A program made the position numbers and the translations under genes. Below are positions 4,701 to 37,462 of a stretch of DNA of 64,000 bases, in pieces. The stretch is from the NCBI GenBank assembly GCA_964036045.1, contig OZ038378.1, positions 171,368,001-171,432,000 on the forward strand, given 5' to 3'. Source of the DNA: Eutreptiella sp. 'Long Island Sound 2002' (Eukaryota; Protista; Euglenida). How positions within the stretch are numbered: position 1 is the stretch's first letter; the number at the start of each line of letters is the position of its first letter. Under the pieces are notes generated by a model, which had not been told where the DNA came from, ran no database searches, and was given only the letters and a program-made list of their open reading frames with translations.

Positions 4701-6106
4701 GAAACCCCCGGAGCCATGGGGGGTACTCCGGCTCACAGCAACACCCCCCCTAACCTTTTGGGCCCTGTGGGGGGGGGGGGGGTGGCCGCCGGGCGGTGAT
4801 CCCGAGTACCCCAACATACATGTCTCAAAATGAGCCCCTTGTTGCACTGGTCATTTTGAACACACATATGTGGGGTTCTGGACAAAAAAATTCCCCTCAG
4901 GGGGGTCCGATCCCAGCAGCCAAGTTGGGGGGACTGGATGGGGGAGGTCAGGGGTCAGAAAACATTTCATACTTTGCATACATATTTGGATTCCCCATGA
5001 AATTCTGAGCATTTTAAGGATACACAAAAGGGGCAAAAACGAAATTTTATCCCCCCCACCATATGCAAAAAAAAATAATTTTCCGGCACCTTCGGCACCA
5101 AGTATGGGCCAAATCTGGTCCGCACTTCCTCAACGATTTGGACCTCCCGGGGGGGGGGGGAGGGGGGGGGGGGGGGCGGTCTGATGTCGGGTTCTGAGCC
5201 TGGGCGTCCCCCGTGCCCGGAGCAATGAAACCGTTCATGTTGGATCAGAAAGCCTGGGCACCTCTCAAAGTGGGAGAATGCCACGCCCGTCAGGGCCACT
5301 GGTCTATTGAGGTCCAGGATGCAGGTGCGCCTGTGGCAGAGCGGAGGCAGTGTCTGATCCCCGCCCCTGCCCTCTTGGCCAGCCCCGGCAGGCGCGACGC
5401 CACCGAGGGACCTGCCACGCCCATTAGGGCACTCCCAAGAAAGTCATGAGACAATGGCACCGAGGCAAGCCCGCGGAAATTGCATGTGAGGGTCATAGTG
5501 CAGAGGCCGCGGCCATGCGGGAGTCCCGGCTCAGCAAGCGCGTTGTGTGCAGCTGAATCCGTCAAGACGCGTTTGTTCCGGAGCTCATCTGACGGCGGGC
5601 ACGTATATCTGACCATTCAAACATATGGAGCCCGTCCGGGCTGGTCCAGTGCGACCCACCCTCGAAAACGGAGGGGGGGCACAAAATATGAGACCTCAAC
5701 ACGATCGCCACGTCGCGCTGACAATTTTGAGATATATGTGTCGGGGTTGTATGCCGCCACTCATTGGCTCCGGTCGCCCGTGCCCCACGCTTCACTGCCC
5801 AGTATTCGACGGTGGTCACAGTGCAAGAGTGCACTTGGGAATGTTCAGCACTCTGAAAGACTTGGGGCGGGGGGGAGGGGCTTCCCAACATCCCAACACA
5901 ATTTCAGGCACCTTCGGGCCCTCTCTGTGCGGGCTTTCTTGGTCGCCACTGGGCAACTAACTTTCAAAAAGGAGGGGGGGCCGCGTCTATGGACTGGGCC
6001 CCTCGTCAATTCAAAATCGTATGTTTTGTTGGGGAGCTTCCAATGATTCCCCACATGACAAGATTGCTGCAATTGATGCCCCCAGTACAAGAACATGGTT
6101 GTGCTC

Positions 6107-6138
<32 letters not shown>

Positions 6139-9100
6139 GCCTCAGCCTGCCGTTCCGCACCGCTAATGCGAGAGGCGCTAGTCGCGCGCCTCGTCCTGGC
6201 AGCCTCAACGACGGCATACCAAATAACAGGGGTCATTGAGCATTGAGCATTGGATTGGGCCACATGTGCTGAAATCTCAGGGGATGGGCACCCCGTACTG
6301 GGGGGCTTCCCAACAACAACAAGAGGGAGGCATGGGACACGAGGTGCGGGGAGGTGGAGAGGCAGAACGCAAACGCCACCGTGTAAAGGCAACAGCACAG
6401 GGGCGGAAGAAGGGGTTCGGGAACACACCTGTCTCCTCCAATCGCTTGATCCCAGCCGTCAACTTGGTGACATATACATCGATGTTGAGGGACAGCCACG
6501 TGAGGCTGGTCTCGCCCGGGTGCGTGAGGCGGTCCAGGGCCTGCACGCACCGAGTCATGAGGGAGCGGGTGATGGGGTTGATCATCCCCACCACCCGGTC
6601 GTACTCCTTCAGGGCATACATCAGCTGATTATAGAAGCCCTTGAGCTTGTCCGCCTGCATCAACACGATGCGTGCACTCTCAGGGAGCTGGACCCCGATG
6701 CGCAGCAGGCACTTGGACTCCCGGATCAACTGGAAGACCTGCAGAGAGGGGCCAAAAGAATGCCCAGCCCATGCCCCAACCGGCCCAAGAGGACGACGAC
6801 GGGGTCACCATCCATCGCCCTTCATTTAGTGAGGGGTTCGTGCGGTCTCGGCCTTTGAAAAGCTGGGTCTGATGGTGGCGACACTGTGCGGCAACGGGAC
6901 TTCATGGGGCCTCGAATGGTCAGTTTGCAATGTCCGCGTTAGGCTCTGGCCGCGCCGGACCCACGGCTGTCATCGCCTTGTGTCCATCCCGCCATGGTAC
7001 AGCGCTTTCACAGTACGAAGTTTGATCTCAAGTTCAGCCCTCGTCCCTGTGTCTGCTTGCAGCACTGGCGCTCTGGGCTCTACAGGGTTATGTGTGCATC
7101 CTGGTCAGGGGACACTCCCTCCCTGTGCTGCTGTGGAGGGGGGGGGGGGGGATGCAATCCATGAGCGCGTGAAGGAATGTTCCACAACATGCTGGTTGGT
7201 GACTGTGTAGTGCAACCGGTGTCTGGTACCATGTCATGAGCATTACCTGCTTTTTTTTTGTCGGTGTCATTTGTAGGAGGGCAAAGGCCGATTAAAGTCC
7301 TGGACGCTGTGCGACGGGTTAGGCGAGTGGGTTATGGATCAGGGGCTGGCGTAGCGTCATTTGTGGGAGGGAGGCGTGTGTGTGCGGGGGGGGGGGGGGC
7401 ATGGAATGCCCCTCCTACTGCTCTCAGTGCGCACAGGGGCAATCCTCTGCGCTCGTGGCATCCACTCCCCTGCCATTGCTGACAGGCTTCAGATTCAGTC
7501 ATTCCCAGACCCCAAAGTTGTCAAGGGTGCTCTCCGCCACGTGTGATGTGGGAAATCCCAACACAGGGCCAGGGGGGCTTCCGGATCACCAAGCGTGGCA
7601 CATCGGTGGTGTGCTGCCCTGCCAGGCACTTTGCCCTTCGGGTTGCTCATGGAGCGTGCTCCCTGTGCCATGAGCCAGGCAGTCACCGGCAGTTCGGAGC
7701 GCGGTCAGGGGGATTGCCGTGAAGCTGAGTAAGTGCACCGGGCGGTACTTCCTGGAGTACACACTGGTTTGGGGCTCCGGTCGGAAATTGCCTGCGTTGC
7801 TCATCCGTCGACGGTGGGGGAGAAGTAGTGCTTGGCAGGCGGGGACCCGGTCACTACAGCCATGGTCTAGGGCGTGCTGGGCCCCATGGCGATTGGCGTG
7901 TCGCAGAAGGTGGCCGTTCACCCAACCCTTTGACGCACAGCTGTCGTCGCCTGCAAACCGTTTTGCTGCGGATGGCCCGGACTTGAGGCCTCGGACCAAA
8001 AGGCCTGTTTCCCAAACGGGTTTTGTAAAAGTGGTGCCAAAACGCACCGGCACTATGCGCCAACCTGACCAACTCACCCAATGAGGAACTTGGATGGCGA
8101 AAGACTGAGGGAAATGGGGGGAAATGAGGAATGGGGAATATGATGGCAAAGGCTTGAACAGGTGAGGGGTGGCAGGAAAATGAGAGGATACCGTGAAAGA
8201 TGGGCGACATCTTCCCATTTTGCATGACCCCATTTCCCATGTTCTCTGGAGGCTCACACTCCCACCCGCAGGTCCCTAACAAAACAAAACACACCCACCG
8301 TGACTACCGATGGACAATGGGAAAGTTCGCTGCTCACCGACATTTACCACCACAGCGGCCAGTGCAGAAGCAGTTGCTGGCGTCAGAAGCGGGCAAGGTC
8401 TGGCGGAAAATGGTCAGTGTGCGGGATGGTACCGACGGCCGTGCGCGCTTGTTCGGGTTTTGGGGAGGAGATTGTGTACATTGCTTGTCCACAGGCGGCG
8501 CGGACACTTATTTCGTACGAAAGGAAAAAGGGGGGGGGGGGCTGCCATAGAGGCGAAGTCAGTCTGCTGGCTGGCACTTGTGATTGTGCGCACTGGTTTG
8601 AGGTTTTGGAAACAAATTGTCCACATTGCTTGCTCCAAGCCGCAGAGGGGGGGGGGGGGATATTTTGGGTACTTGAGAGTGGGGGGGTGGTTCCTCTGCT
8701 GATGGGGGGAGGGGCGGGGGGGCGGAGCGACGCCGAGTCACACGGGCGGCGGCATCGAAACCGGGCACGGCTGGTTACGTACACATGGGAAACGCCACGT
8801 ATCCCCTTTTCGGGTCGGCACTAGGGGTTGCCTTTACGAACGGACTTGTGCAGTACGCACCCGTCCGCCCACGTGCACAGGCACTGATCCCATGCAAACG
8901 ATGATGGACTGCGGGCAGGTTGATGGGACGAGGTCCGGGGGAAGGGGGGCGGACCTCCATGTCGAAGTTGACGTACAGCTTGCCCTCCGACCGCACGATC
9001 ACCGTCGCCTGCAGCCCTGCCTTGGCACTGGCGATGCTGTTGCGCCACGCATTGAGCCACACCGTCTCGTACTCCACCAGGGCTCGGGCGACCTAAGCGA

Positions 9101-22931: not shown

Positions 22932-24998
22932 TTACAGGACAAAGAAAACATGCAGCAGCACTAAACAAAATGCAATGGCCCGCGTATTCATTTTGCTGAA
23001 CCGAACGCATGTGCATACTGTAGCCCAAGCGCAAGATACCTTGAAATGGGTCTCCACCCTTTCTACCAGCTGGGCCTTGGTCCGTGCAACTGAAAGGTAG
23101 TGCTTGCAGATGGACCGCAATTCAATATCAGACCATTCATGGAAATGCTGGTGGCAACCTGTGCATCGAAACCAACCCCTCAAGAATAAACAGAAAGCAT
23201 CCGGAGTCCTCTAGAGGGTAACCGCAAGCATCCCGAAAGCCTCCAGGGTGCAACATTTCTCAGGGGCTCCAAGGAAACACCAGCCGCCTCTGATTTATTT
23301 AAAGACCATACACAGTGTGCAACGTTCCACGAGCAGTGCAGGTACTAGCCCTGAGCATGCTTTGCTCAGAGCTACAGCAGATCTACTTGTGCAAACAGTT
23401 GATGCCACAATGGTGGGGCTGAGGAGAGCACTTCTGCCCTTCTGCCCTTGACCTTGTTTCAAATATGGGTGGTCCTTCAGGAGCGTTTTTTTCCCCCTTC
23501 AGGACCGCTAAGTGTGGCTTTGCACTAGAGAGGGGCAAAGTAAGTGTACACACTGGTTTGCATTGGTTTGCGCCACTGCGGAAAAGTAGTTCTACTAGTT
23601 GAAAGTGGGACAACTGCTTCTGCCCCTTGGTGTACCTCCCATGCCGTTGCCCGCATGCTTCACACAAAATCTTTCCCAAGACCTTGAAATTTGGAGGGTG
23701 CTTCCGAGTCAGGAAGTGTTATGAAATCACTGGTGCGCAGCATGTCCAAGCATTTTGCCATTTGGTTTTTTTGTTGTGTCATTTGTGCAGTGTGCCAGCG
23801 GCAACGGAATGCAGATGAGGTTACAGCCCCATGACATCTGTCAAGGGCGGACCAGATCTACCAAAGCAAGCTAACAAGGTCACATCTCCTTTCCAAGGCT
23901 GGACTGGATCAGCCATATGATAGCACTTGGATTGCACTGTGCGTGTGCACGGAGTGGTCCAAAAACACCTCTGTTGTCAATTTTTCCCGTCGTGGCTACG
24001 CCCCTGACCCTGTCGATTTCTCCTAGATCCCCCGCTTGTGCAGCTCACTTGGCCTTCCAAGGCTTGGGGATGGCTGGTTCTGCATGTGGGGTGGGGGGGG
24101 GCACTTGACGTGGTGTGTGTTCACCGCGGAAAGTAAAGCGCAGCAGACCCCAAGCTGCCATTGATTTCAAGGCTTTTGGGCAGTGCACCCTGTTGTCAAG
24201 GCTTGTCCAAAGGTTGTACTGGCACACTACAGCCACTGGGGGTTCCAAATACAGCGTTGTATGTTCGTCACCTACAAGAACGCTGTACCGCGCGCACACA
24301 GCGCATGGTACACCCCCTCAACTGACCTCATTCCCTTGGACCCTGAGTGGTCTCAAATGTTGCTGCAGGTTAGACTCTTGCAGAGCTCACACAAATCACA
24401 GTGAAGATGCGAATGAATCACATATCCCCCCCCAGGGGTGGGGGAACTGTCACTTGGCCCATGAACAATAAGAAATCAATAGGGATCACAGGCGCCGAAG
24501 GCGCTGAAGAAAAATTTCGATTGGGTTCAGAATTCAGGTTATTGTTGTGTGGTGTCCGTCCCCCCTGGGGGTGGGGCGAATCGTCATTTGGTGACAGTCC
24601 CCCAGGGGGTGGGGGGGAACTGTCGTCCCTTGGGGGGGGGGGGGGGGTAGGTACCCCGCCCCCCCCTTGCGCAAACACGGGCCAAGTTCTGGTTCCAGGA
24701 CCAAAAGTGCAGAAACACGGGGTCCCCGTGTTTGGACAAGCCCGTGTTAGCACGCGGCACGTACTGCGGAACACAAGTTGCAGGCATAGGGGGACCGGCC
24801 ACGCTCAGGTGAAAGAGGCGACGAGGGAGCCCCACCCGAGGGTGAAGGTGATCGTATGGGGAAGGAGACACGCTCCAGAGGTGCATGATGCTCTTGTTCA
24901 TGCCCGTTGCGACCCAAAACTCGAGCAGGCACAAACTCATTGTTTGTGTACCGCTGGTATGTGACAGGCTGTCCAGCAGCGAAAAGAGAATCGTTCAT
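22932..24998 (-). pseudogene. Decayed TE-like ORF: Tudor/SH3-like N-terminus, Cys pairs, SAP-like C-terminal helix pair
   Basis: Fragments GQPVTYQRYTNNEFVPARVLG..GHEQEHHAPLERV (24747-24998), CEACGQRH (23383-23679) and CTGCHQHF then WSDIELRSICKHYLSVARTKAQLVERVETHF (22932-23183, SAP-like). Multiple stops and frameshifts; interrupted by a MITE. Confidence 0.5.
24426..24647. mobile_element. MITE-like element, inverted homologue of 16805-17044
   Basis: Shares gtcacttggccc...ggcgccgaaggcgc...gaattc...gtca(t/c)ttggtgac; C-tract and G-tract ends. Confidence 0.7.
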
Positions 24999-25791
24999 GA
25001 CTATGAAAGAGTGTCCAACAAACCGGCATACACCCCAGAGTACAAGAGCACATGGAAGTATAGCTGTAGCAACACTTTGTCACCCACATTGACCCTTCCT
25101 GCATCCTGCACAAAGCTATAAACCACGTTCTCTATTGGATCAGAACCGCAAAAACGACGGTTCAAAAAAAGGACCAAAAGTGCGGGCCATATCCCTTGGA
25201 TCACACAATCCTGGTCCTGCAGGCACGTCATCGCAGATTCTTAAGGCTGTTTTGGGGGGTCAAATGTGTTGAAAGACTTAGACTGCTGAGAGCGCCCACC
25301 GCCAAATGTTCACGATGGATATCAGAAGGGTTGTTGCCCAAACGGGACAGCTGTGCAGTTGAAGTATAAAAGCTGTACTGTTTTTAGAAGTACTAAACCC
25401 AGAAAAGTAAAACAGTTGCAAACAAGTATCAAAATTACAGAAAACACAACCGCTGTCCTACCCAGGAAGCAGTACAAGTACCAGCGAAAGCATACATCAT
25501 TTTAGCTACTTCTAACGGGTCGTACCAGTTTTGTTTGTTTGAAGCTATAGAAAGCGGAACCACCGACGAAAAAATTTTTTTTCGAAAAGTGCAATGACAC
25601 AAGGGAGTGCAGAATGCGGATACAAGGTATGCGTGGCAGGGACAGGCGTGATGCACAGGGCAAAGAGACACAAAGCAACACAGCAGCAGACGATACTGTG
25701 AAAATGTAGCAAGCATTACCTTTCGTGGTCTTGAGTATGGATACTAACCGTCGGACAGCGACTATATTACATGGTCAAATCAGCAGAATGG

Positions 25792-25891
25792 AAAATCTCA
25801 GCGCATTTGCGCTCAAAAAATCTGAAACGGCTAATATGATACCATAAAACTGCTGTTTGGTAAAATCTCAGCGCAAATGCGCCGAGATTTT
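25792..25891. repeat. Two copies of the palindrome AAAATCTCAGCGCA-NN-TGCGCTGAGATTTT (left cluster)
   Basis: Copies at 25792-25820 and 25862-25891. Confidence 0.9.
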
Positions 25892-26246
25892 TTGGAATCA
25901 GCAAAACAAGGTCTGAGAACCTGTCTCTGGACGCCCGGTACATGGCGTGCAAAAGTATCCCACGGGTGACATGCACCAGTAAAAGTAATGTGGCTCGTCC
26001 GACAAACACGGACGACATATAATGCAACACAACTCTATGGCAGCCTCTGATCTGCTCCACCATGTGTCACACGTTGGCATGCATGCACCATGCTTGCAGG
26101 AAAAGTAGTCCAACACGAAGTGTCGGAAATTAGAAGGGATGTACAAAGATCGTGGTTACTGTGTACAGCAACCCACGCAACGTCGATGGTGCAAAAGCGC
26201 AACAGCGGTAAAAATATATAGCACAAAACTTTCTGAGTACCCGTGC

Positions 26247-29189
26247 CTACTTCTTTTTGCCTTTCTTCAACGCGGTGCCCGTGAAGGCGGCTGCATTGAA
26301 GGCCTCCATCGGCGAACGCTTCTTCGCGTTGATCCCGGCTTCCTGCGCAGCAGCGTCGGTCTTTGCTTTCGCTTCTTTTTCTGCGTCCGCCTTCTCCTTC
26401 TTTTTCTTTTCCCTTTCTTCCTTGTCGTGCTTCTTCTTCGCCTCTTTCTCGGCCTTTTCCGTCTCCTTCTTTTTGCGCTCCTTCTCCTTCTCTTCCGCCT
26501 TCTTCTTTTTCATCTCCTCTTTTTCCTCCTTCTTCGACATCTCGCATCGATGCTTCGATGGCTCGGCACTGGTAGCTGCCTTGGAGCCTTCACCTGCAGG
26601 TGCCTCATCGTCCGTGTCGTCATTCAGTTCGGCTTCCTCTGCGGCATCAGCATCTTCAACGTAATCGGTCGGGAAGGCATCGTTGATGTTTATCAGGATG
26701 TTGCGCCACATCATCGCAGGCCTCGTGTCTTCCGTTCGCAATTGCGCCTGGAGATTTGAGCAGCTCTCCGACAGGTCGACCTTGGTTCGCGCATCGCCGA
26801 TCACACCCCAGCACCAACTCAAGCCAACCGGCATCTGACAAAAGATGGCGGCAAGACTTCGGCAGTCCTCCGCGACCCAGTTGACCCATCGCATTGCCTT
26901 CTCCTGCGGCTCATCGTCCCCGGAGTTGCTCATGAGCGTCAACACGTAACCCGCATCCTCCAGCGGCAGCCCGTCGTTACCGGCGCCTGGATGGCAGATG
27001 AATCTCGGTACCTACGCATGAGTGGTGCAGTGTACTCTTCTACTTGGTACGTGCTTCTTTACAACCACACAGTATTGCAGGGGGTTGCGATGGTACAGGG
27101 ATTCGCATGTATTGCAGCCATTCCATACCTGCTGGGATATCCAGCCCGTGTGGATCACCGTCAGGCACATCTCGTCCACGAGGTAGGGGGTCCCCTTCGT
27201 TGCCTTGCCGTAGCAGGTGAGATCCAGGCTCATTAGTGGGGCATCCCCCCCGTGAGTGCTGGTGATGATGTTCTTGAGCGCATACATGTCGCTTCTATGC
27301 CCGTACAACACAAGGGGGATGCCCCTCATCAAGGTGCCTGCAAGAAACTGCGGGAGTCCGGATGACCAATAGCGCGGCACCTCGAATATCGAGAGGTTCA
27401 TTGGCAGAGCGCTGATATCCGCAGGCACGGCGACGCCCGCTGATCCATCGTATAAGAGGAGTTTCCCTTCACAATAGTCGTTTGGGACGTTAACCTGCGC
27501 AACCCCGCCTTCAGCCTTCGATACTTGGGGTATCATGACCGGCTTCGCCAACATCTCGCGGAGGGATACCAGCATCTCCTTGTCGGAGGTCCACAGCTGT
27601 GCTGCTTGCACTGCAGCATACGACGGAAACGGCTCCGACGGGGTCCATTCCCAGCTCTTATGCGGTGTGATGGTTGCAGCAGTCACTGGACGGCAATACT
27701 GTCGTGCCCGTGTCATCTCCAGGTCCGTCTCTGAGAAGCGAAAGAAGGAATGCAATGCACACATCGACAGATCGAGTCGAGCATGGCTGTCAATTTGAAC
27801 TGTGTATGCATGCCGGGAACAGAAGTGGTGTACGCAGTGCGCAAGGGGTACACGCATACTTCTGCTTGGATGGATTCGATGTTGTGACGGATGGTAAAAG
27901 TGCCAGTACCAGAACTGCTGAATGCGCACCGTCTTGATAAACTTCGTGATCCCGGCCACCGTACACTTCGGTGTGGCACAATAGGTGGCCACTTTCTGCA
28001 GATTCTCCGGTATCAGGATCGCACAGTACTTGAATGTGGACATCGTCACCGGGACCTTGCGCTGCAGCAAGCTGTACAGGGATTGCACGAAGGTGGCGCC
28101 GCAGACCTGCACCATTGATGCCAGAGGCCTGAGTTGCTTCGCGACTGCCTCCTGCATGTTGATGCGCACAATGGAAGGCGAGCGACCATGGCTTAGCAGC
28201 AAGGAGCTCGAAGAAGAAGAGAAGCGGTGCACAAATCGGGAACAGTCAAAGGAAGAAAGCATACCGGGGATCCTGATTTGGCAGCAAATCCGCTCTGGAC
28301 AATGGTGTCTTCGAGGATCTCACCAAGGGAACGAGTGAGATCCGGATCTTCGTCAAACAGTGTTTGCATCAGGCGGCAGACCTCGTGGAGATTGTTCATG
28401 CTGCCACTGTGTTGAGCGCGATTATGGATACCCGCCAAACGCCGACGAACTTGTACTGTTGTATTGAAACGGACGATGTCCAGATCGAAATGGGTGACGT
28501 GGTTTGGGGCCGTTTTCATCTGCTCGGCGTACGACTTGGCAATCTCGTCGTTAGCCTCCTTTGCATGCTGTCCTGCAATACACCACGTACTCCCAGCTGC
28601 GAGATACGCGAGGGCACGTTTAGACACAGAAAGCGGGCCACAACTGTACACAAGAACCACACAAACACAACGGCCACACACCTTGATCGTCCCAGCAGAG
28701 AAGTACAAGACGCTCCTTTGGAGGAGCAGCCAGCAAATCGGTCTTCACCTCCTTGACCCGTTCTGGGTCAATGTGTCTTGTCTGCCCCATTGTGCATGTC
28801 CAATCAATCTGCACGGACGACGACGGCACGTTCACTCTCCGTTCCACAATGAACTCACCCAACGCCAACTTCGCCATTCGTGTGCCACAATCCTTCGGAC
28901 GCATCTTCACAGGCAGATTGGCTGCATCCCCAGACTTCTTCTTCTTGTCCTTTACTTTCTTCGGGGAACCTGTCAGCTGCTCCTGCACAGGTCCAGGCTT
29001 CCCAGCATTTGTTGGCTTGTTGTCATCATCGGCGGAATCGGATCCATCGTCAGACTTGTCGTCGCCCTCCGAAGGTTTCGTCTCGGCGTCATTGTCTGCA
29101 TCAGAATTCCCGCTGCAGTCGGAATCTTCCGTCTTCGAGCCCTTGGCTGGCTCATTGTCCGAACTATCATTGTCGTTGTCCTTTGCCAT
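26247..29189 (-). CDS. ~832-aa protein: acidic N-tail, ParB/Srx-like domain, possible degenerate beta-class DNA methyltransferase fold, Lys/Glu-rich C-tail
   Basis: Exons 29189-28682, 28596-28265, 28151-27860, 27730-27129 and 27011-26247 total 2499 nt. All four GT-AG introns (85, 113, 129, 117 nt) are phase-consistent and there are no internal stops; the exon 3 boundaries have alternatives. ParB-like: RHIDPERVKEVKTDL...LVLLCW...WCIAGQH...RRLAGIHNRAQH. Confidence 0.7.
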
Positions 29190-29781
29190 AGAGTACAGGC
29201 ACTGGCAGACCAAGGCAGAAGTGGGAACATAATAAAATATAACAAACGAGACTATTGTACCACAGCACTACACAATCCCGTTTCCCAAAATCATACATCA
29301 ACAGCTAAAGCTAAGCCTGTTGTGGTTCAATAGATGCACTAGCAGCAGGGAACAGCCTTCTATGGAGACAAACGGGTGGCACAAGGTGCGATACAGATGA
29401 TGCAAATCTGTGAAAACGGCCTGAACTATCAGCAAAGAAAAGGACAGGGAGGATAATGACATGTGCGGACGTACACAATTAAACAGAAGTAGTGGGACAC
29501 ACTGAACTCATATGACCAGTGCTCAATGTAACTAATACGTCGCATCGGAGTGGCAATAAGCAACAGAACACAAGGATCGGATTATCATGTTGGGAACTGC
29601 GGTATGTCGTCGCACACCGCATGCACGCACGTTCTAACCCACCCTGTACGACATATGTTTGGTACATTGAAGGGCCACAGGAGGATTCAAACAACAAGTA
29701 GACGGCAGCAGCGGCTGTTTGGCAGGTCTGTGAAAAACCATCCTCGGCAGCGGGTTAAAAACGCGATATTTCACGGAAATA

Positions 29782-29809
29782 AAAATCTCAGCGCATTTGC
29801 GCTGAAAAT
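29782..29809. repeat. Internal copy of the ~30-bp palindrome between the transposase-like ORF and the ParB-like gene
   Basis: aaaatctcagcgcatttgcgctgaaaat; the downstream flank tagctgttatc also follows the 31427 copy. Confidence 0.9.
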
Positions 29810-30128
29810 ATACAATCTAGCTGTTATCGTGTATCAAATCACTGATTTCTGTTCCCGGCTGTAACGTGTGCACGCGCTGCACAGCTGAGGTACCGGTAAC
29901 CGGGGCCCGCAGGATCGCATGTACTGTGTGCATCGCATTTCAGGTCCGACAGCCTGTACCACAAACGGGAAAACATGTTCAACCCGGTGTGCGGTGGTCC
30001 TGACGACCCTAGCGGTCCAGTATTCCATTCAAGCGTCACGAGCGAACAACCGCGAAGCAAAACACGCAAGACACCGGGCCGACAGCACGCTGAAGAGGCG
30101 CAGTAAACGTCGCACAGTACTTCGTAAT

Positions 30129-31056
30129 TTAATCATCGTCCTCGTCGTCGACATCAATCGGATCCGGATCCGGATCAGGATCTAATGGTTCATTGGGGCG
30201 GTGTGCAACTGGTATGCGCAATGCATCTGGCACAGGGCCCTGTATGCTGTTGTGTGTCCCTCACTAATGTGAGTAGCTGCACCAATTCGGCGGACGTGCC
30301 GCATTTCAGCTCAGAGATAAGCATCGGCTGCCAGTGCAAACGCTTGCGACGGTTCCGTGCAATGTCCAGCGGCACACGTATCCATGTTCGTGCAACAGCT
30401 TGTGCGTTCACCGCTGCAATAGCATCTGAAAAACCGGCACATTGCTGCCGGATCCCCTGCGCGGTCGCATCAATGTTCTGCACCAAGTCGTCCAACGTGC
30501 GGTGACCGGTAAAGGGGCGTACGTCGATGATGTGCAGCAGCGCGATGACTGTGACGTTCTTTGAGACATCCGCATAAGTGGGGTGTACGGTAAATTGCGC
30601 GTGGTACCAATTGTCCATCCACATAACTGTTGCACGGTTCTTGATGCTGTCCCACAGACGTGCAGCGGCTCGGTCTGACTGACTACGCATGGACGGCAGG
30701 GTGTGGCGCACAAGCCCGGTAGCTGATAGTTGCCGTCTGTCGCGTCTATTGAGAGAGAGAGAGGTCCGCTCACGTAAGCGCTTTCGAGGCGCAGCGAGAT
30801 GCCGCAGCTGCACGTAAAGATGCCAAATCTGCTTGCAAAACATTTTGTACCAGCGCGGTCTTGGTCGTGCAGCACGGGCGGCACACAGCTGTGTCATCTT
30901 GCGGCGCGTCTTCCGGTTCAACCGCAAGGCAAGGGCCCACTCGACGAAGAGAAAGGTAGGCCCGTTGCTGAGAGCCGATGCAACGATAGCATCGCCGTTG
31001 GGCCACTCATACTCTGTGACCAAATCCGAAGCGCCGGCGGCATTCAGGGAAGGCAT
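30129..31056 (-). pseudogene. Internally deleted DUF6589-like (DDE-type) transposase
   Basis: The 288-aa ORF has VMWMDNW (first acidic motif) and IRVPLD..HWQPMLISELKCGTSAELVQLL..QQHTG. It then jumps into an out-of-frame acidic C-terminus (PVPDALRIP...DPDPDPIDVDDEDDD, stop at 30129-30131). The second acidic motif and the GxWH motif are absent. Confidence 0.5.
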
Positions 31057-31170
31057 AACATTGTCTATTCATTGATAGCAACAAACAAGAAGAGTGCAGG
31101 CATGGGGTACGGCAAGGGATGTCCTTTGCAGATAAAACGAGTGCCTGAAAACCAGTTTTGACCTCGCCGA

Positions 31171-31454
31171 AAAATCTCACCGCATTTGCGCTGAGATCTC
31201 ATAAAAGGGCAATTTTACATGATCATATTACCTGTCATCCGCTGCTGATTGTTTCTTATCTGCCACTAGATTTCCTACAATCAAAATGACAACGTTCATG
31301 AAATCTAAGCGCATTTGCGCTGAGATTTCCTGAACGTTCTACTTATGGTACGCATATTGCTGCACAGTGTCTTCCGATTTCACCTCCCACATACATGCCT
31401 GTGCAACCATTTTTTGCAATTTAAAAAAAATCTCAGCGCATTTGCGCTGAAAAA
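31171..31454. repeat. Three copies of the ~30-bp palindrome (right cluster)
   Basis: Copies at 31171-31198, 31301-31328 and 31427-31454. Confidence 0.9.
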
Positions 31455-32454
31455 TCACTGTTTAGCTGTTATCCCCTATGATATTTCCTTTTTTGGTTTC
31501 TTTAACGCCAGTGCACTACCTTTTCCGTTCCTTTTGTTCCTTTCCCTTCATGTCTACGACGATGGCCTCTATCCTGTCTGTGCATACCACCTCACAGATG
31601 TTCTCTTCCGGACTTATTCATGTTTTCTGCATGTTTCCCCTGCTGGTACCCCTTCTTTGTAATCACATTGTTCCGCGGCTCTCCGTCACATCCCTTCTTC
31701 CCTTCTCCTCTTGCACGTGCACAAGCACCATAACAGCAATTGGCCTTTTACATAGTACAATTTGCTTTCCGTGACAGTCCTTCAGGTTACCCGCAAAAAC
31801 ACCTGTTTTTTTCCCATTGCTCCTTGGCATGCTACAACTCTTTCACTAGTTTGTTTACTTTTATGCCCATTTTCTCTGACAACCACCTCCGTGGTTTTTG
31901 TGTCAAGGTTGCTTTACAGAGGGTCCAATTTGGCGGGTAGTCTCAGCAGTCTAAGAAAGATGGATCCCTCCCCCCCATCCTCACTGGTCAGAACAAGGGG
32001 GGGGGGGGGGTTGGACAAAGGGGGGGGGGGGTAGGACCAGGAAAAATGGGGGCAACCGGGGAAATGTGGGGGGGGGGCACGGGGGGAAAGGGGGGAAGCT
32101 AGGACAATTTGAGGGAATGGGATGACAGAGATTGGTGACAATGGGACTACTTCGTACTACAGCTGGGAAACTTGTCAAAAATCTGTTGGCGCAATTGGTC
32201 CCACCAGAACTTCTCCCAAGATGCAAGGCTTGAATGAGTACAACTTGAATTTCTTCACTTGCTTGGAAAACCACCCCACTGATATCCACTTCCTTTTGGG
32301 GGTGCAGAGCACCTTGGGGGGAATGTTTGCCCCACGTGTGCCTGGCGCGCTACCTTTGCATTAAGTATCCTGGCTAAAACCCCAAGTTTATCCTCACCTC
32401 GGGAAGTCCCCCAAGTAGACCATGCTGGACCGCAAACCTTCCCTGCAAAGCACA

Positions 32455-32550
32455 TGTGGGTGGAATGGCTACATCCTGCCTTCTCGGGTGTTCCCAATAG
32501 AAGGGGACCAAATCAGAAGTGGCTACATCACCCCTGCCATCTTGGGGGCA
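32455..32550 (+). repeat. Degenerate relic of the 85-bp repeat unit
   Basis: ggggaccaaatcagaagtggctacatcacccctgccatcttggggg resembles the 36783 array unit. Confidence 0.65.
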
Positions 32551-33000: not shown

Positions 33001-34359
33001 AGCTAAAAATCACATCAAAACGGCAGCATTGGGTTGCAGTTGCAAGCAGAATAATGGTATGAGCAGGAGGAACTACCAAAAGCGTGATCCAGCCCCCTCA
33101 TCCCTCTACAATCACAGCACAACCGCATCACAGTACATTTCTGACCACAAAAAAACCCTGGCCAGAAAAAAACAGGAAAACGACGCTCAGACGGGTCCCA
33201 TGCTTGGACAAGGCAAGCCCCCAACCACCACTGCCCTATTTCCAACAAAAACCCAGCTTTTTTTGGACATCTGAGCCCATCATTTCCCCAATTCTCTGTA
33301 GAGCATACAAAAATTGCTCAATTCCCCCCATTTGCCCTGAATCCATAACGGTGCAGAAACGGGTACTTCTGAGCCCTGGCCCTCACCACACCCTCCAAGC
33401 AAATGACCACCCAGTCATTTCTACAAAATGCGATTGTTATATTTTCACCTAAAAGCAACCATGGGGTGGAGGGGACTCCAGGACTCAAAATCCATATAGA
33501 GGCTGGGCCTCTGGGGGCGTTTGCGCACAGCGCCAATTATTACATTGTTTATCCCGGGAACACCCCTGAAAACCACCCACCTACAAAAGCGTGCATAATC
33601 CATTCAAAACAGCATCAGGGGTGCAGAATTTAGGTCCCTGGGACCCATGGTTACCAGTGGTGAAAAACAGCCGACTTTTCGCACAGCGCACGGTGCACCC
33701 CCTCTGACTGCACCCTGCTCTGGGATGCCAATTTGTCCTAGCCCTGGCCCTCAGAAAGCAGAAGATGACCACCCAAGAGATCAGAAGAAAAGGATCTTCA
33801 ATGACCTCGCCATGTTGCCAACACAACAACAACCCCCTGGCCCCCCATGACAGCAACCAGGATGTTGCATGGATCTTCTCACCGAGTGTGTCCATCACGG
33901 ACCCGCCCACAACCAAACACCCGCGTGTGGGCAGGAGTGACACATGCCATGCAGAAGCCCTTCACCACCGCAAGAGATAGGCCCTGCACCTGAAAATAGG
34001 CTGAGCTGGGCCGCTTCATTTGCAGTGTTGCACTTTTGTGCAGGGGGGCCGGGATTCTCGGAAATCGGATATCATGCTTAAAACCCCCCCCAGAGCCAAA
34101 TTTAAAAAAGGGGGGGGTTTTGGGGGGGTTTTCGCTGCGCGGGGGTATTGTCCGCGGAAACGGCCCCCCGGCCCCCCAAACCCCCCCCCCCCCAATGAAG
34201 AACATAGTGTCGGGCACCTCCGAACAGTTGGGTATGCGGCCCAGGTGTGATCCGACAATTCGCACCGCCCCTACCAACGTCTATGGTAGGGTTTCATCGG
34301 CTTGGGTATTTCCGGCCGTGGGTACCAGAAACCTCGGGACTGTGGGTCTCCGAGGCGGT

Positions 34360-34724: not shown

Positions 34725-36782
34725 CTACTTCTTCCGCCCTGACGTCTTCACCGTGCAACGCTTCTTCGCATTTTGCTTGGTAGCGGTGATGGGCCGCTTT
34801 GTGCCCTTGCCAGGAACGGCTTTCTTTTGCGGGACAACTTCCACCCCGGAAGAAGAGGTGGAAGAGGAAGAAGATGAGGAAGAAGAGGAGCTATTGCCAT
34901 CCTCGGAAGTTGCGGCACTCTCGTTACCGCTAGACGGATCGTTATCTGCGGACGACCTAGATTCCACAGAGCTTGCATCCTCCTCCGGTTTCCAGTCCCA
35001 ATCGGAGCGTCCAAGAGAGGCTTCAGAGAAGGACGCACTCTCGTTGTCCACCGCCTTTGCCACTTTCAAAGTGATCTTGGGCTTCATCACCATGGGGATT
35101 TTTTTGGCTCGTCCCTTGTTCTTCTCATCGTCTTGCCCGACTACAACCCATTCCGTCAAATCAACGGTGTTGGGTGGCACGGTTGGATGGCACCGAGCCA
35201 AGTGAGTTTTGATGTTCAAAACCCACGGGGTGGCACTGCACCCGGGAATAGGACATTCACGGGGCATGTTTTCTTTTTTGCGTGTGGCCATTGCGAGCTT
35301 CAATGGGACCACACATGGGCATGTGCTACTGATTTTCTTGCCCACAATACTTGTGGTACACGTGCCTGTTGTGCGTCCACAAAAACCACAAGGTTCGGCC
35401 TCACCATGCATCCTTGGGTCCGTTACCACCTCTCCTTTCTGCAAGTGCACTGCCACATGATGACGCATCCTTGCCAAAGCAATGGCCGCTCCACAAAACA
35501 AACAAAATTCTGTTGCTTCTGCGGGCCGCACGCTAGTATGTGTCACACCAGCGTATGGCTCTGCACGCAACTGAGGACAATTGGGTACCTTTGCAGTTTT
35601 CACAAAGGCAAACAGGGTGCCCACTGGAATCAGCCAACGACCATCGGCATCCATTTGGGCATCCAAAAAAACCACATGCCCATTCCGAAACTCACATTCC
35701 GGACCAAACCGCCCCGTCCACCGCAACAAGGTTGGATCACTGGTCATGCTGACAAAAGGCCAAAATTGACCCGTTACGGGGATGGCATGTCCTGTCGCAA
35801 GCGCCTCCTTCGTGGTACCATAAACCCGTGCACCATCAACGGTGCACCATGAAAACCTAAATGTGCCCACGGAACACGTCCGTTGCGAGCCCCATATGAA
35901 GGTCACAAGTGCAAGAAAGATAGCACCCACCGTGACCGCGTCCTCATCAAAATTGCAATTGTCAATGCAAGGCAATGCAACATTGTTTACATTCGTGGGG
36001 GTTTGACCAAACCGGGCGGTTTGTGCCGTGCGCCGCAGCCGATCGGTTGACGCATGTTCAACGTTGCCGTTGAAATACTCATTGACAAGTTGTGCAATAT
36101 GCACGGTGTGTCCATTGGCGCATGTGACATAGGCTTGATTTCGGTCAGAACCATGACAACGCAGCCAGGATTCCAGGGAACAAGCATCGGCAGGATCGCT
36201 ATCCTCCATTCCTTTGGTGTCCGGGGCGGTCCCCAAAAATTCGTCTTCTTTGTCCAAGACAAGGGGTGCACCACATGGTTTCAAAAGGGTTGCACCGCCT
36301 TGGTAAAGAGATTCCAAGACATTGTGCGCAGATGAGCCAATCTGTGGGTGTTCCTCAAGGATGGTTGTGGCACGCGCTGTACCCCTTTCCCAAACCTTTT
36401 TGAGATCAACACTTTGCACACTACAATCCGCAGTGTACTCAAGTGGAGTCAATCGATCAGTGGTGTAGCGCTGATGCCGCTTGCGCCAATCAGGATGTGC
36501 CAAAAAAATGTCTTGAATGTCCAAAACAGCCTGCAGGCGGTCCCGCAGCTGCAGTACATCAAAATTGCGGTTGTGGTTCAGGGTGCGGGTGATGGAAAAC
36601 AAGTTCTCGGCCGGTTGAGACCCCAATTGGCATATGTACAACGATGCCGTTGGGTCACGGACCTGCATGACCTTTACAGTGATGAAGAGGGTCTGAAAAG
36701 TGACTTGCCACCGCAAATACAAGCTTGTAGGTATGAAATCCTTTTGGTATTTATTGAAGGCGTACAACATCAATTGATGGCC
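34725..36782 (-). mobile_element. 5'-truncated P-element/THAP9-like transposase with a C-terminal Cys/His (Zn-finger-like) cluster and an acidic/basic tail
   Basis: About 680 uninterrupted codons. LGSQPAENLFSITRT resembles the P-family QDxLENxFxxIR motif carrying the catalytic Glu. Also STDRLRR and CLFC..RHHVAVH..EPCGFCGR..C..C.C..CPIPGC..W..NIKTHLARCH. The upstream catalytic Asp region is replaced by the 85-bp array. Confidence 0.65.
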
Positions 36783-37462
36783 CGGGGATCCCCACCGCTG
36801 CAGAGCGGGGGGCAAAATCAGAAGTGGCCCACAAGTGGGCAAAATGGCTACCTCACCCCTGCCGTCTCGGGGATCCCCACCGCTGCAGAGCGGGGGGCAA
36901 AATCAGAAGTGGCCCACAAGTGGGCGAAATGGCTACCTCACCCCTGCCATATCGGGGATCCCCGCCGCTTCAGAGCGGGGGGCAAAATCAGAAGTGGCCC
37001 TCAAGTGGGCAAATTGGCTACCTCACCCCTGCCATATCGGGGATCCCCGCCGCTTCAGAGCGGGGGGCAAAATCAGAAGTGGCCCACAAGTGAGCGAATT
37101 GGCTACCTCACCCCTGCCGTCTCGGGGATCCCCGCCGCTGCAGAGCGCGGGGCAAAATCAGAGGTGGCCCACAAGTGGGCGAAATGGCTACCTCACCCCT
37201 GCCGTATCGAGGATCCCCACCGCTTCAAAGCGGGGGGCAAAATCAGAAGTGGCCCACAAGTGGGCAAAATGGCTACCTCACCCCTGCCGTATCGGGGATC
37301 CCCACCGCTTCAAAGCGGGGGGCAAAATCAGAAGTGGCCCATAAATGGGCAAGGTGGCTACGTCACCCCTGCCACCTCGGGGATCCCCACCGCTTCAAAG
37401 CGGGGGTCAAAATCAGAAATGTCCAAAAAAAGGGCGGAAATGCAACGTCACCCTTGCATTGT
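36783..37462 (+). repeat. 85-bp tandem array, 8 copies plus a degenerate partial copy
   Basis: Unit starts at 36783, 36868, 36953, 37038, 37123, 37208, 37293 and 37378. Consensus cggggatccccNccgctNcagagcggggggcaaaatcagaagtggcccacaagtgggcaaaatggctacctcacccctgccgtNt. Confidence 0.97.

Follow-up and report, generated by a model that had tools for sequence, protein, structure and literature searches.

We analysed a 64-kb stretch of contig OZ038378.1 from the euglenid Eutreptiella sp. 'Long Island Sound 2002' (64,000 nt; hereafter the window, whose positions serve as coordinates throughout) and found that positions 25277-31955 are a recently active cut-and-paste DNA transposon with terminal inverted repeats (TIRs). 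The family to which this copy belongs has two genes, here called gene A and gene B, and a set of long palindromes, and the arrangement of gene A, gene B, and palindromes is kept in lineages that are only ~30% identical. The family is probably a two-gene TIR transposon in which gene A encodes the transposase and gene B an accessory protein that binds the palindromes. The window copy is a non-autonomous deletion derivative without the catalytic centre of gene A.

The window was compared by blastn with seven loci (L001-L007) from ENA assembly ERZ25074135 of the same genome. The similarity to the other copies started at 25277 (25272 in L001) and ended at 31955-31975, giving a mobile unit of 6,679 bp. 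At its limits lie TIRs of 24 nt, which are 83% complementary and identical in their first 15 bases (CTTAGACTGCTGAGAGCGCCCACC at the gene-B end and CTTAGACTGCTGAGACTACCCGCC, read inward, at the gene-A end). The TIRs start with CTTAGACTGCTGAGA, so that the termini begin CTTAGAC, and matching termini were present in L001, L003, L005, L006, and L007. Perfect target site duplications (TSDs) of 5 bp were found in five of the six complete copies, the window counted, and their sequence differed by copy (AAAGA in the window, ATAAA in L003, AAGGA in L005, ATTCA in L006, and ATATT in L007); the flanks of L001 showed a 6-bp match, ACTTTT, instead. The flanking DNA was unrelated among the window and the seven loci, and the copies were 91-99.2% identical to each other. 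Relatives of a 288-aa open reading frame (ORF) that represents a piece of gene A were 79-100% identical and all belonged to ERZ25074135, on contigs of 0.37-3.4 Mb, and the cluster of gene A products at 90% identity had 23 members on 23 contigs. The element thus shows the hallmarks of a class II TIR transposon, namely TIRs at the limits of the repeat, a TSD of fixed length and variable sequence, and dispersed as well as deleted copies. Because TIRs, TSDs, dispersed near-identical copies, and internal deletions occur together, we conclude that the element moved recently by cut and paste.

An earlier prediction, made from the letters of the window alone, had proposed a DDE-type DNA transposon here, which agrees with these data, and had placed its ends at 25792 and 31454. 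Those positions are the outermost palindromes, and the element extends beyond them by 515 bp and 501 bp; insertion boundaries with TIRs and TSDs do exist, at 25277 and 31955. The ~63 bp of inverted homology described in the original prediction was also found, as two arms of 69 nt with 77% complementarity (64 nt, 78%, E=4.5e-8 by blastn), and it is an internal subterminal repeat rather than a TIR.

Two relatives of the family were seen in L004 (641-2594 and 8449-10527), ~76-80% identical to it, 7,947 bp apart and in the same orientation, with one truncated where the contig ends; this may be a tandem arrangement. Such a spacing would fit a repeat that arose by segmental duplication, as a satellite unit, or from an integrated viral fragment. 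At the seven loci, however, the flanks are unrelated and the shared ends are precise and carry TIRs; the 5-bp TSDs are perfect but vary in sequence, and the internal deletions are nested. A non-transposon origin of this kind is therefore extremely unlikely.

The full-length copies were ~7.8 kb long (7,809 bp in L006 and 7,818 bp in L007). L005 is a 2.4-kb internal-deletion form in which only both end regions are left, L003 is without the sequence of window 29069-30237, and L001 is without that of window 26273-29097. The window copy is without ~1.15 kb at 30237-30239, where L001, L002, L004, L006, and L007 each carry 1,134-1,169 additional bases and the flanking alignments overlap by 3 nt. An intact gene A is one ORF of 687 aa (P0068, P0069). 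Because of the deletion, gene A of the window is cut to 273 residues followed by a frameshift, and the 288-aa ORF at 30190-31056 on the minus strand is the remaining piece. It keeps D148, whereas D281, the CxxH motif, and E486 (P0069 numbering), discussed below, are gone. Reverse transcriptase (RVT_1) ORFs were observed within or adjoining two copies, at L002:16710-19718 and at L011:12298-15943, L011 being a locus of a second family in the window genome. The ORF in L011 separates the gene A part from the remaining element. These ORFs suggest nested retroelement insertions.

Both genes lie on the minus strand, as do all long coding ORFs of the region, which confirms the co-orientation reported before. 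A profile search recovered relatives of gene A at 28-35% identity, P0072 and P0073 from the same assembly and P0075-P0081 from other metagenomes, and a scan of JGI metagenomes with the gene A alignment gave one 3.1-kb contig only, which supplied no surrounding context. The alignment of 12 gene A sequences contained the motifs VLWMDNW, RVPLD, PLLVDENIHYR (LIDCAIHY in the window family), YGVWHAYK, VRECTWxGR, and FVEESxEAxxSRL. The motifs around two D residues and an E residue were nearly invariant among the 12 sequences, and we infer D148, D281, and E486 to be the putative catalytic residues. D148 and D281 are separated by 133 residues, the second D is directly followed by CxxH or ExxH (DCAIH or DENIH), and a long, mostly helical insertion of ~200 residues precedes the putative catalytic E. 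In the structure model of gene A, D148 is on a β-strand, D281 closes a strand that leads into a helix, and the first ~90 residues form a confidently modelled helical bundle. Each of the eight top-ranking PDB fold matches was a transposase of Hermes (hAT) or of the P element, at weak scores (best E=0.017, probability 0.75). In hAT, P, MuDR, Kolobok, Dada, and IS256, the second D is immediately followed by C/DxxH and the TSD measures 4-10 bp (PMC3706591). Gene A therefore appears to encode a DDE transposase of the C/DxxH group (hAT, P, MuDR, Kolobok, Dada), a group that it fits without reaching placement in a single superfamily. It is also under purifying selection; between L006 and L007, 57 synonymous and 41 non-synonymous codon changes were counted, and the differences at codon positions 1, 2, and 3 numbered 28, 19, and 57. 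The label DUF6589 (PF20231) that gene A had been given at first was discarded as unsupported, since hmmscan of 12 family members was blank at E≤1; the precomputed Pfam annotation of family members was likewise blank.

Gene B is predicted to be spliced, as had been proposed, with five exons and a product of 854 aa instead of the 832 aa estimated earlier. Its four introns are all GT-AG, and the unspliced ORF pieces span 26247-29213 on the minus strand. Between L006 and L007, exons E2 and E3 differed by 3.5-4.6%, introns 1 and 2 by 10.8-15.7%, and the intergenic spacer by 15.4%. Synonymous changes exceeded non-synonymous ones with a bias to the third position in E2, E3b, and E4; E3a showed the synonymous excess without the third-position bias. 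The acidic exon E1 evolves freely, and the stretch modelled as intron 3 showed no coding pattern and a predicted local distance difference test score (pLDDT) below 50 in the structure model. Comparison of the two copies thus indicates purifying selection on gene B. The N-terminal ~100 residues are an acidic tail rich in Asp and Ser that evolves without constraint, and the last ~110 residues are a low-complexity tail rich in Lys and Glu (exon 5, window 26250-26600), which on the plus strand corresponds to a CT-rich repeat family. For the central part of gene B, the model had a pLDDT of 75 and a predicted template modelling score (pTM) of 0.66, with a five-helix domain (pLDDT >90) followed by an alpha/beta domain. 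Its best local fold matches, over ~100 residues, were Rossmann-like methyltransferase halves and Alba/SpoVS-like folds (all E≥0.018). The methyltransferase halves came from COMT, CbiT, TrmI, MTA1, and a phage adenine methyltransferase (E≥0.026); no oxygenase fold appeared in this search.

An exhaustive search with a 416-aa ORF of gene B gave 62 relatives, mostly short gene-call fragments. Pfam detected no domain in these relatives and nothing meaningful in the gene B ORF pieces. In L008 and L009, two contigs of ERZ28614740 (another sample) whose gene A is only ~30% identical to that of the window family, a gene B homologue follows downstream of gene A with matching orientation (L008 segments 5518-5886 and 6737-6952, with hidden Markov model matches down to E=2.5e-14; L009 segment 5441-5611). 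The second family of the window genome, in L011, gave a single weak gene B match (E=0.003). Because gene B is kept beside gene A in lineages only ~30% identical, it is a core partner of gene A. The idea that gene B is a recently captured cargo was accordingly rejected. The original prediction as a whole, an element at 25792-31454 with a DUF6589 transposase and a captured ParB-like cargo gene, is right in that the palindromes, the inverted homology, and both genes are present. It is nevertheless very unlikely, since the shared sequence continues beyond those limits to the TIRs and TSDs, no Pfam family including DUF6589 matched the 12 members, gene B and gene A occur together in distant lineages, and gene A of the window is truncated.

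The palindrome (~28 nt), searched as TCAGCGCATTTGCGCTGA with up to three mismatches, was found at six sites, whereas 0.05 sites are expected by chance in the 64-kb window. All six sites are inside 25792-31454, in clusters at both ends and between the genes as first described, and with its flanks the palindrome reads AAAATCTCAGCGCA(TT/AA)TGCGCTGAGATTTT. A 62-nt unit containing it occurs in direct orientation at 29778-29839 and 31423-31484 (81-86% identical). The palindrome recurs at identical positions in every copy of the window family; of these six positions, three are upstream of gene A at a spacing of 126-129 bp, one is intergenic, and two form an inverted pair downstream of gene B. The relative in L004 (~80% identical) keeps the sites with small changes, and the subterminal sites are present in all deletion derivatives. 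Outside the element, neither the rest of the window nor ~100 kb of DNA flanking the copies contained a site of this palindrome, so that it is specific to the element.

Other lineages carry other palindromes. The window-family palindrome, TCAGCGCA(WW)TGCGCTGA, has 6 copies (chance 0.05), that of L008 (9.9 kb), TGCGTAATTACGCA, has 41 copies (chance 0.035), that of L009, CGCGTAATTACGCG, has 18 copies (chance 0.015), and that of L011, GTTTCAC-N8-GTGAAAC, has 12 copies (chance 0.06). In L008, tandem arrays of 28 bp with up to six units lie near both contig ends, and palindromes also lie between the separate ORF pieces of gene B. Between the main lineages, sharing across loci is seen only for L008 and L009, whose two variants are closely related. 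The palindrome is thus a feature of the element that changes with the lineage. In both L008 and L009, the coding sequence of gene A contains one palindrome copy (L008:2742-2755 and L009:3559-3572), whose in-frame translation, 'LRNYA(N/F)Q', falls in a variable protein linker. The second family of the window genome, which carries GTTTCAC-N8-GTGAAAC, occupies L011:8418-20631. Its half-sites GTTTCAC and GTGAAAC look like the halves TGTTTCAC and GTGAAACA of the bacterial parS site, which may be a coincidence.

The palindromes might be cis-regulatory or structural signals read by host factors, such as a promoter, a terminator, or a DNA or RNA hairpin. The 62-nt unit upstream of both genes in the same orientation and the two sites downstream of gene B are compatible with such signals. 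A shared host factor would not predict different palindromes in one genome, as found for the window and L011 types, and the motif differs by lineage and is absent outside the elements in the window and its ~100 kb flanks. In addition, the 28-bp arrays of L008 look like arrays for protein binding. Recognition by a host factor is therefore quite unlikely, and a protein of the element itself is the better candidate.

Gene B resembles ParB in a short segment. The junction of exon 1 and exon 2 reads '...GQTRHIDPERVKEVKTDLLAAPPKERLVLLCWDDQ | AGSTWCIAGQHAKEA...', and the counterpart of its second part in L008 and L009 is 'KY(F/Y)IISGQHR(Y/F)(A/V)AA', with the motif 'IISGQHRYAAAG'. The motif is CIAGQHAKEA in the window family and VIGRQHG in P0013, and both 'IISGQHRYAAAG' and CIAGQHAKEA align to 'ILDGSRRRASA' of P1 ParB. 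The N-terminal part of gene B may therefore resemble ParB box II / DGQHR at the level of the motif. Of the ParB-like character claimed for the gene at the outset, this resemblance was retained, whereas Pfam, NCBIfam, PADLOC, a PDB profile search, and hhalign were negative or non-significant.

For a combination of a ParB-like protein and palindromes in a eukaryotic transposon, of which the original prediction knew no euglenid example, comparable systems are already reported from red, brown, and green algae. In red-algal Plavaka elements (EnSpm/CACTA), the accessory protein PAG3 has an N-terminal ParB-like region and the elements contain inverted-repeat arrays, which the authors propose to be the binding sites of the protein itself; the ParB assignment of PAG3 is also weak (HHpred E=0.29) (Petroll et al. 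2025, bioRxiv 10.1101/2025.02.11.637652). Further examples are the Ectocarpus element Sola1-1_Ec32 and the DNA methyltransferases fused to ParB that occur in green algae and chytrids, for which binding and modification of the own element were proposed (PMC12477816; PMC4738411). Gene B was set beside PAG3 and the Ectocarpus protein by their descriptions. Like Plavaka, the window family is a DDE-type transposon with a conserved accessory protein, here ParB-like at the level of the motif, and with inverted-repeat arrays inside the element (6 sites in the window family, 41 in L008, 18 in L009, and 12 in L011). Plavaka differs in its Plavaka/EnSpm transposase, its size of 17-19 kb, its three accessory genes, and the putative 2-oxoglutarate (2OG) oxygenase domain at the end of PAG3, whereas the window family has a transposase without a Pfam match, a TSD of 5 bp, a length of 7.8 kb, and one accessory gene. 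The Ectocarpus protein is, as gene B may be, a transposon accessory protein with a ParB-like domain and a second enzyme-like domain. Sola1 and the ParB-methyltransferases are unlike gene B in having a recognisable N6/N4 or Dam-type methyltransferase domain, in the Sola1 superfamily, and in gene orientation. No methyltransferase or 2OG oxygenase domain of Pfam was detected in gene B, where the weak local fold matches are to methyltransferase halves only.

Gene B is the best candidate for the reader of the palindromes, because it is the conserved partner, because it has a ParB-like motif and domain order, and because PAG3 and Sola1-1 provide precedents. The palindromes could otherwise be classical subterminal sites for the N-terminal helical domain of gene A, comparable to those of Ac/Ds, P, and En/Spm; gene B would then not recognise the palindrome and would serve the element in another way, for example by modifying DNA or chromatin, by countering silencing, or in nuclear import. 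This alternative gains from the location of the sites, five of which (out of six) lie at a distance of 500-790 bp from the ends and are retained in every deletion derivative, from the helical bundle at the N-terminus of gene A, from the weak methyltransferase-like folds in the central domain of gene B, and from the statistically unsupported ParB assignment. The palindromes of L008 and L009, however, occur throughout the element, also in the stretches that separate the ORF pieces of gene B, dyad-symmetric arrays beside a ParB-like accessory gene have a direct precedent, and the first ~500 bp of each end are free of palindromes. Recognition by gene A is thus considered less likely than recognition by gene B, and it is a serious alternative all the same.

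Several results count against a gene A transposase with a palindrome-binding gene B partner. No Pfam match at E≤1 was obtained by hmmscan for P0068, P0069, and 10 relatives of gene A, its profile had no match at E≤10 among PDB sequences, its AlphaFold model was mediocre (mean pLDDT 57, pTM 0.52), and none of its fold matches in PDB reached E≤0.001. The splicing of gene B is predicted from a sequence model. Searches of the gene B exon pieces for ParB, DndB, and DUF262 gave no match in Pfam (E≤10), NCBIfam, PADLOC, and the PDB profile search; these library searches took separate exon pieces, and the ParB-like region is split by intron 1. When the spliced N-terminus of gene B was compared by hhalign with a home-made profile of P1 ParB and seven plasmid ParBs, the probability was 0.1% (E=0.47, 15 columns), in a weak test with shallow profiles on both sides (effective number of sequences, Neff, 2-3). 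The only aligned segment, GSTWCIAGQHAKEAN with GKIEILDGSRRRASA, was at the expected motif. The arginine is absent from the motif of the window lineage (GQHA), and the central region of gene B had no fold match at E≤0.001 in PDB and BFVD. The intergenic site 4 was lost in L003, which still has a perfect TSD, and is therefore dispensable for mobility. Finally, the sequence data are compatible with binding of the palindromes by either protein.

If the preferred assignment holds, the gene A protein would cut at the TIRs and insert the element via a 5-bp staggered cut of the target. Gene B would be a sequence-specific accessory protein whose N-terminal part is ParB/Srx-like at the motif level, and its dimer would bind the lineage-specific palindromes of its own element, which lie in subterminal, intergenic, and, in the relatives, intronic DNA. 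The bound protein may help to assemble both ends for transposition, or may mark or modify the DNA of the element. The window copy could still make the gene B protein and would borrow the gene A protein from full-length copies such as L006 and L007. It is conceivable, if rather doubtful, that gene A is a new superfamily or very deep branch of eukaryotic cut-and-paste transposases, that gene B is its obligatory partner with a ParB/Srx fold, which recognises parS-like palindromes specific to the lineage, and that protein and sites evolve together as a self-recognition module that bridges the ends or loads a DNA- or chromatin-modifying activity.

Among the known superfamilies, hAT and P resemble gene A in the spacing of the putative catalytic D residues, the CxxH/ExxH motif, the helical insertion, and a TSD within 4-10 bp, with Hermes and P-element as the top, though weak, fold matches. 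The 5-bp TSD of the window family differs from the usual 8 bp of hAT and P, and its TIR starts CTTAG. Neither Pfam models nor PDB chains of hAT, P, MULE, and Kolobok matched gene A, and no BED or THAP finger and no hAT dimerisation domain was detected in it by Pfam. The 5-bp TSD is also reminiscent of Transib. Transib termini, however, are of the CAC type that resembles recombination signal sequences, whereas those of the window family start CTTAGAC, and no RAG1 or Transib chain was among the 50 best PDB fold matches of gene A. En/Spm (TnpA with TnpD) and PIF/Harbinger (transposase with a Myb-like protein) have a second DNA-binding protein that recognises repeated subterminal motifs. The window family is like them in pairing a putative catalytic protein with a second element-encoded protein, gene B being the candidate DNA binder, and is unlike them in that the proteins are unrelated, their TSD is 3 bp, and the termini are different. 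The bacterial ParB-parS system shares with gene B and its sites the combination of several copies of a palindrome of 16-28 nt with a protein that has a GxxR-type motif after a β-strand. The window family differs from it in the lack of a ParA partner and of significant similarity, in the missing Arg of the window lineage, and in the context of a eukaryotic transposon. A function of gene B and the palindromes in partition is unlikely.

Table 1. Features of the transposon copy in the window
Feature	Position	Strand	Remark
TSD, left copy (AAAGA)	25272-25276		same 5 bases at 31956-31960
TIR, gene-B side (CTTAGACTGCTGAGAGCGCCCACC)	25277-25300	+	similarity edge; pairs with 31932-31955
Palindrome site 6	25792-25821, core 25798-25815		kept in every copy having the gene-B end
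Subterminal inverted repeat, gene-B side	25827-25895		partner of 31167-31235
Palindrome site 5	25863-25891, core 25868-25885		within subterminal inverted repeat 25827-25895
Gene B, five exons (predicted)	26247-29189	-	spliced frame, single terminal stop, 854 aa, intact in the window
Gene B exons (predicted)	29189-28682, 28596-28265, 28151-27854, 27730-27044, 26986-26247	-	stop codon included
Palindrome site 4, intergenic	29781-29811, core 29788-29805		within 62-nt unit 29778-29839
Gene A remnant	30129-31056	-	residues 1-273 of 687, then out-of-frame junction to the last ~37 codons
Deletion junction, ~1.15 kb	30237-30239		extra bases in five other loci
Subterminal inverted repeat, gene-A side	31167-31235		partner of 25827-25895; holds palindrome site 3, core 31177-31194
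Palindrome site 2	31299-31329, core 31306-31323		motif scan
Palindrome site 1	31426-31457, core 31433-31450		motif scan
TIR, gene-A side	31932-31955	-	similarity edge; pairs with 25277-25300
TSD, right copy (AAAGA)	31956-31960		sequence inspected directly

In the surroundings of the element, G-rich tracts with runs of 10-13 G flank the insertion on both sides (24549-24670 and 31986-32095), and a comparable tract was seen at L002:5707-5798. A tandem array at 36783-37418 consists of 7.5 copies of an 85-bp unit (93% match), with short related pieces at 32451-32547. The 190 bp at 33513-33702 match L001:2141-2334, which flanks another copy of the element, at 84% identity and probably belong to another dispersed repeat family. 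An ORF of 705 aa at 34725-36842 on the minus strand had no Pfam match and is partly overlapped by ORFs of the opposite strand. Pfam detected no domain in the ten largest ORFs of the window outside the element, Rfam gave no match across the whole 64 kb, and a spliced-leader pattern of Euglena was absent from the window, which is uninformative.

What is new in this family is a transposase outside the curated models, a 5-bp TSD, a compact two-gene layout that is conserved across deep lineages, and a turnover of palindromes that is specific to the lineage. For annotation, the results give a corrected repeat model with the true ends and the TSD, with L006 and L007 as autonomous references and with the window copy as a non-autonomous one. 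If the inferred parts are true, the family would be a compact, recently active system of 7.8 kb with a transposase, one accessory protein, and a short palindrome that varies with the lineage, and it would add a lineage with a 5-bp TSD to the group of hAT, P, MuDR, Kolobok, and Dada. It would then be a tractable model for the question, recently raised for red and brown algae, of whether ParB-like accessory proteins bind or modify their own transposon.

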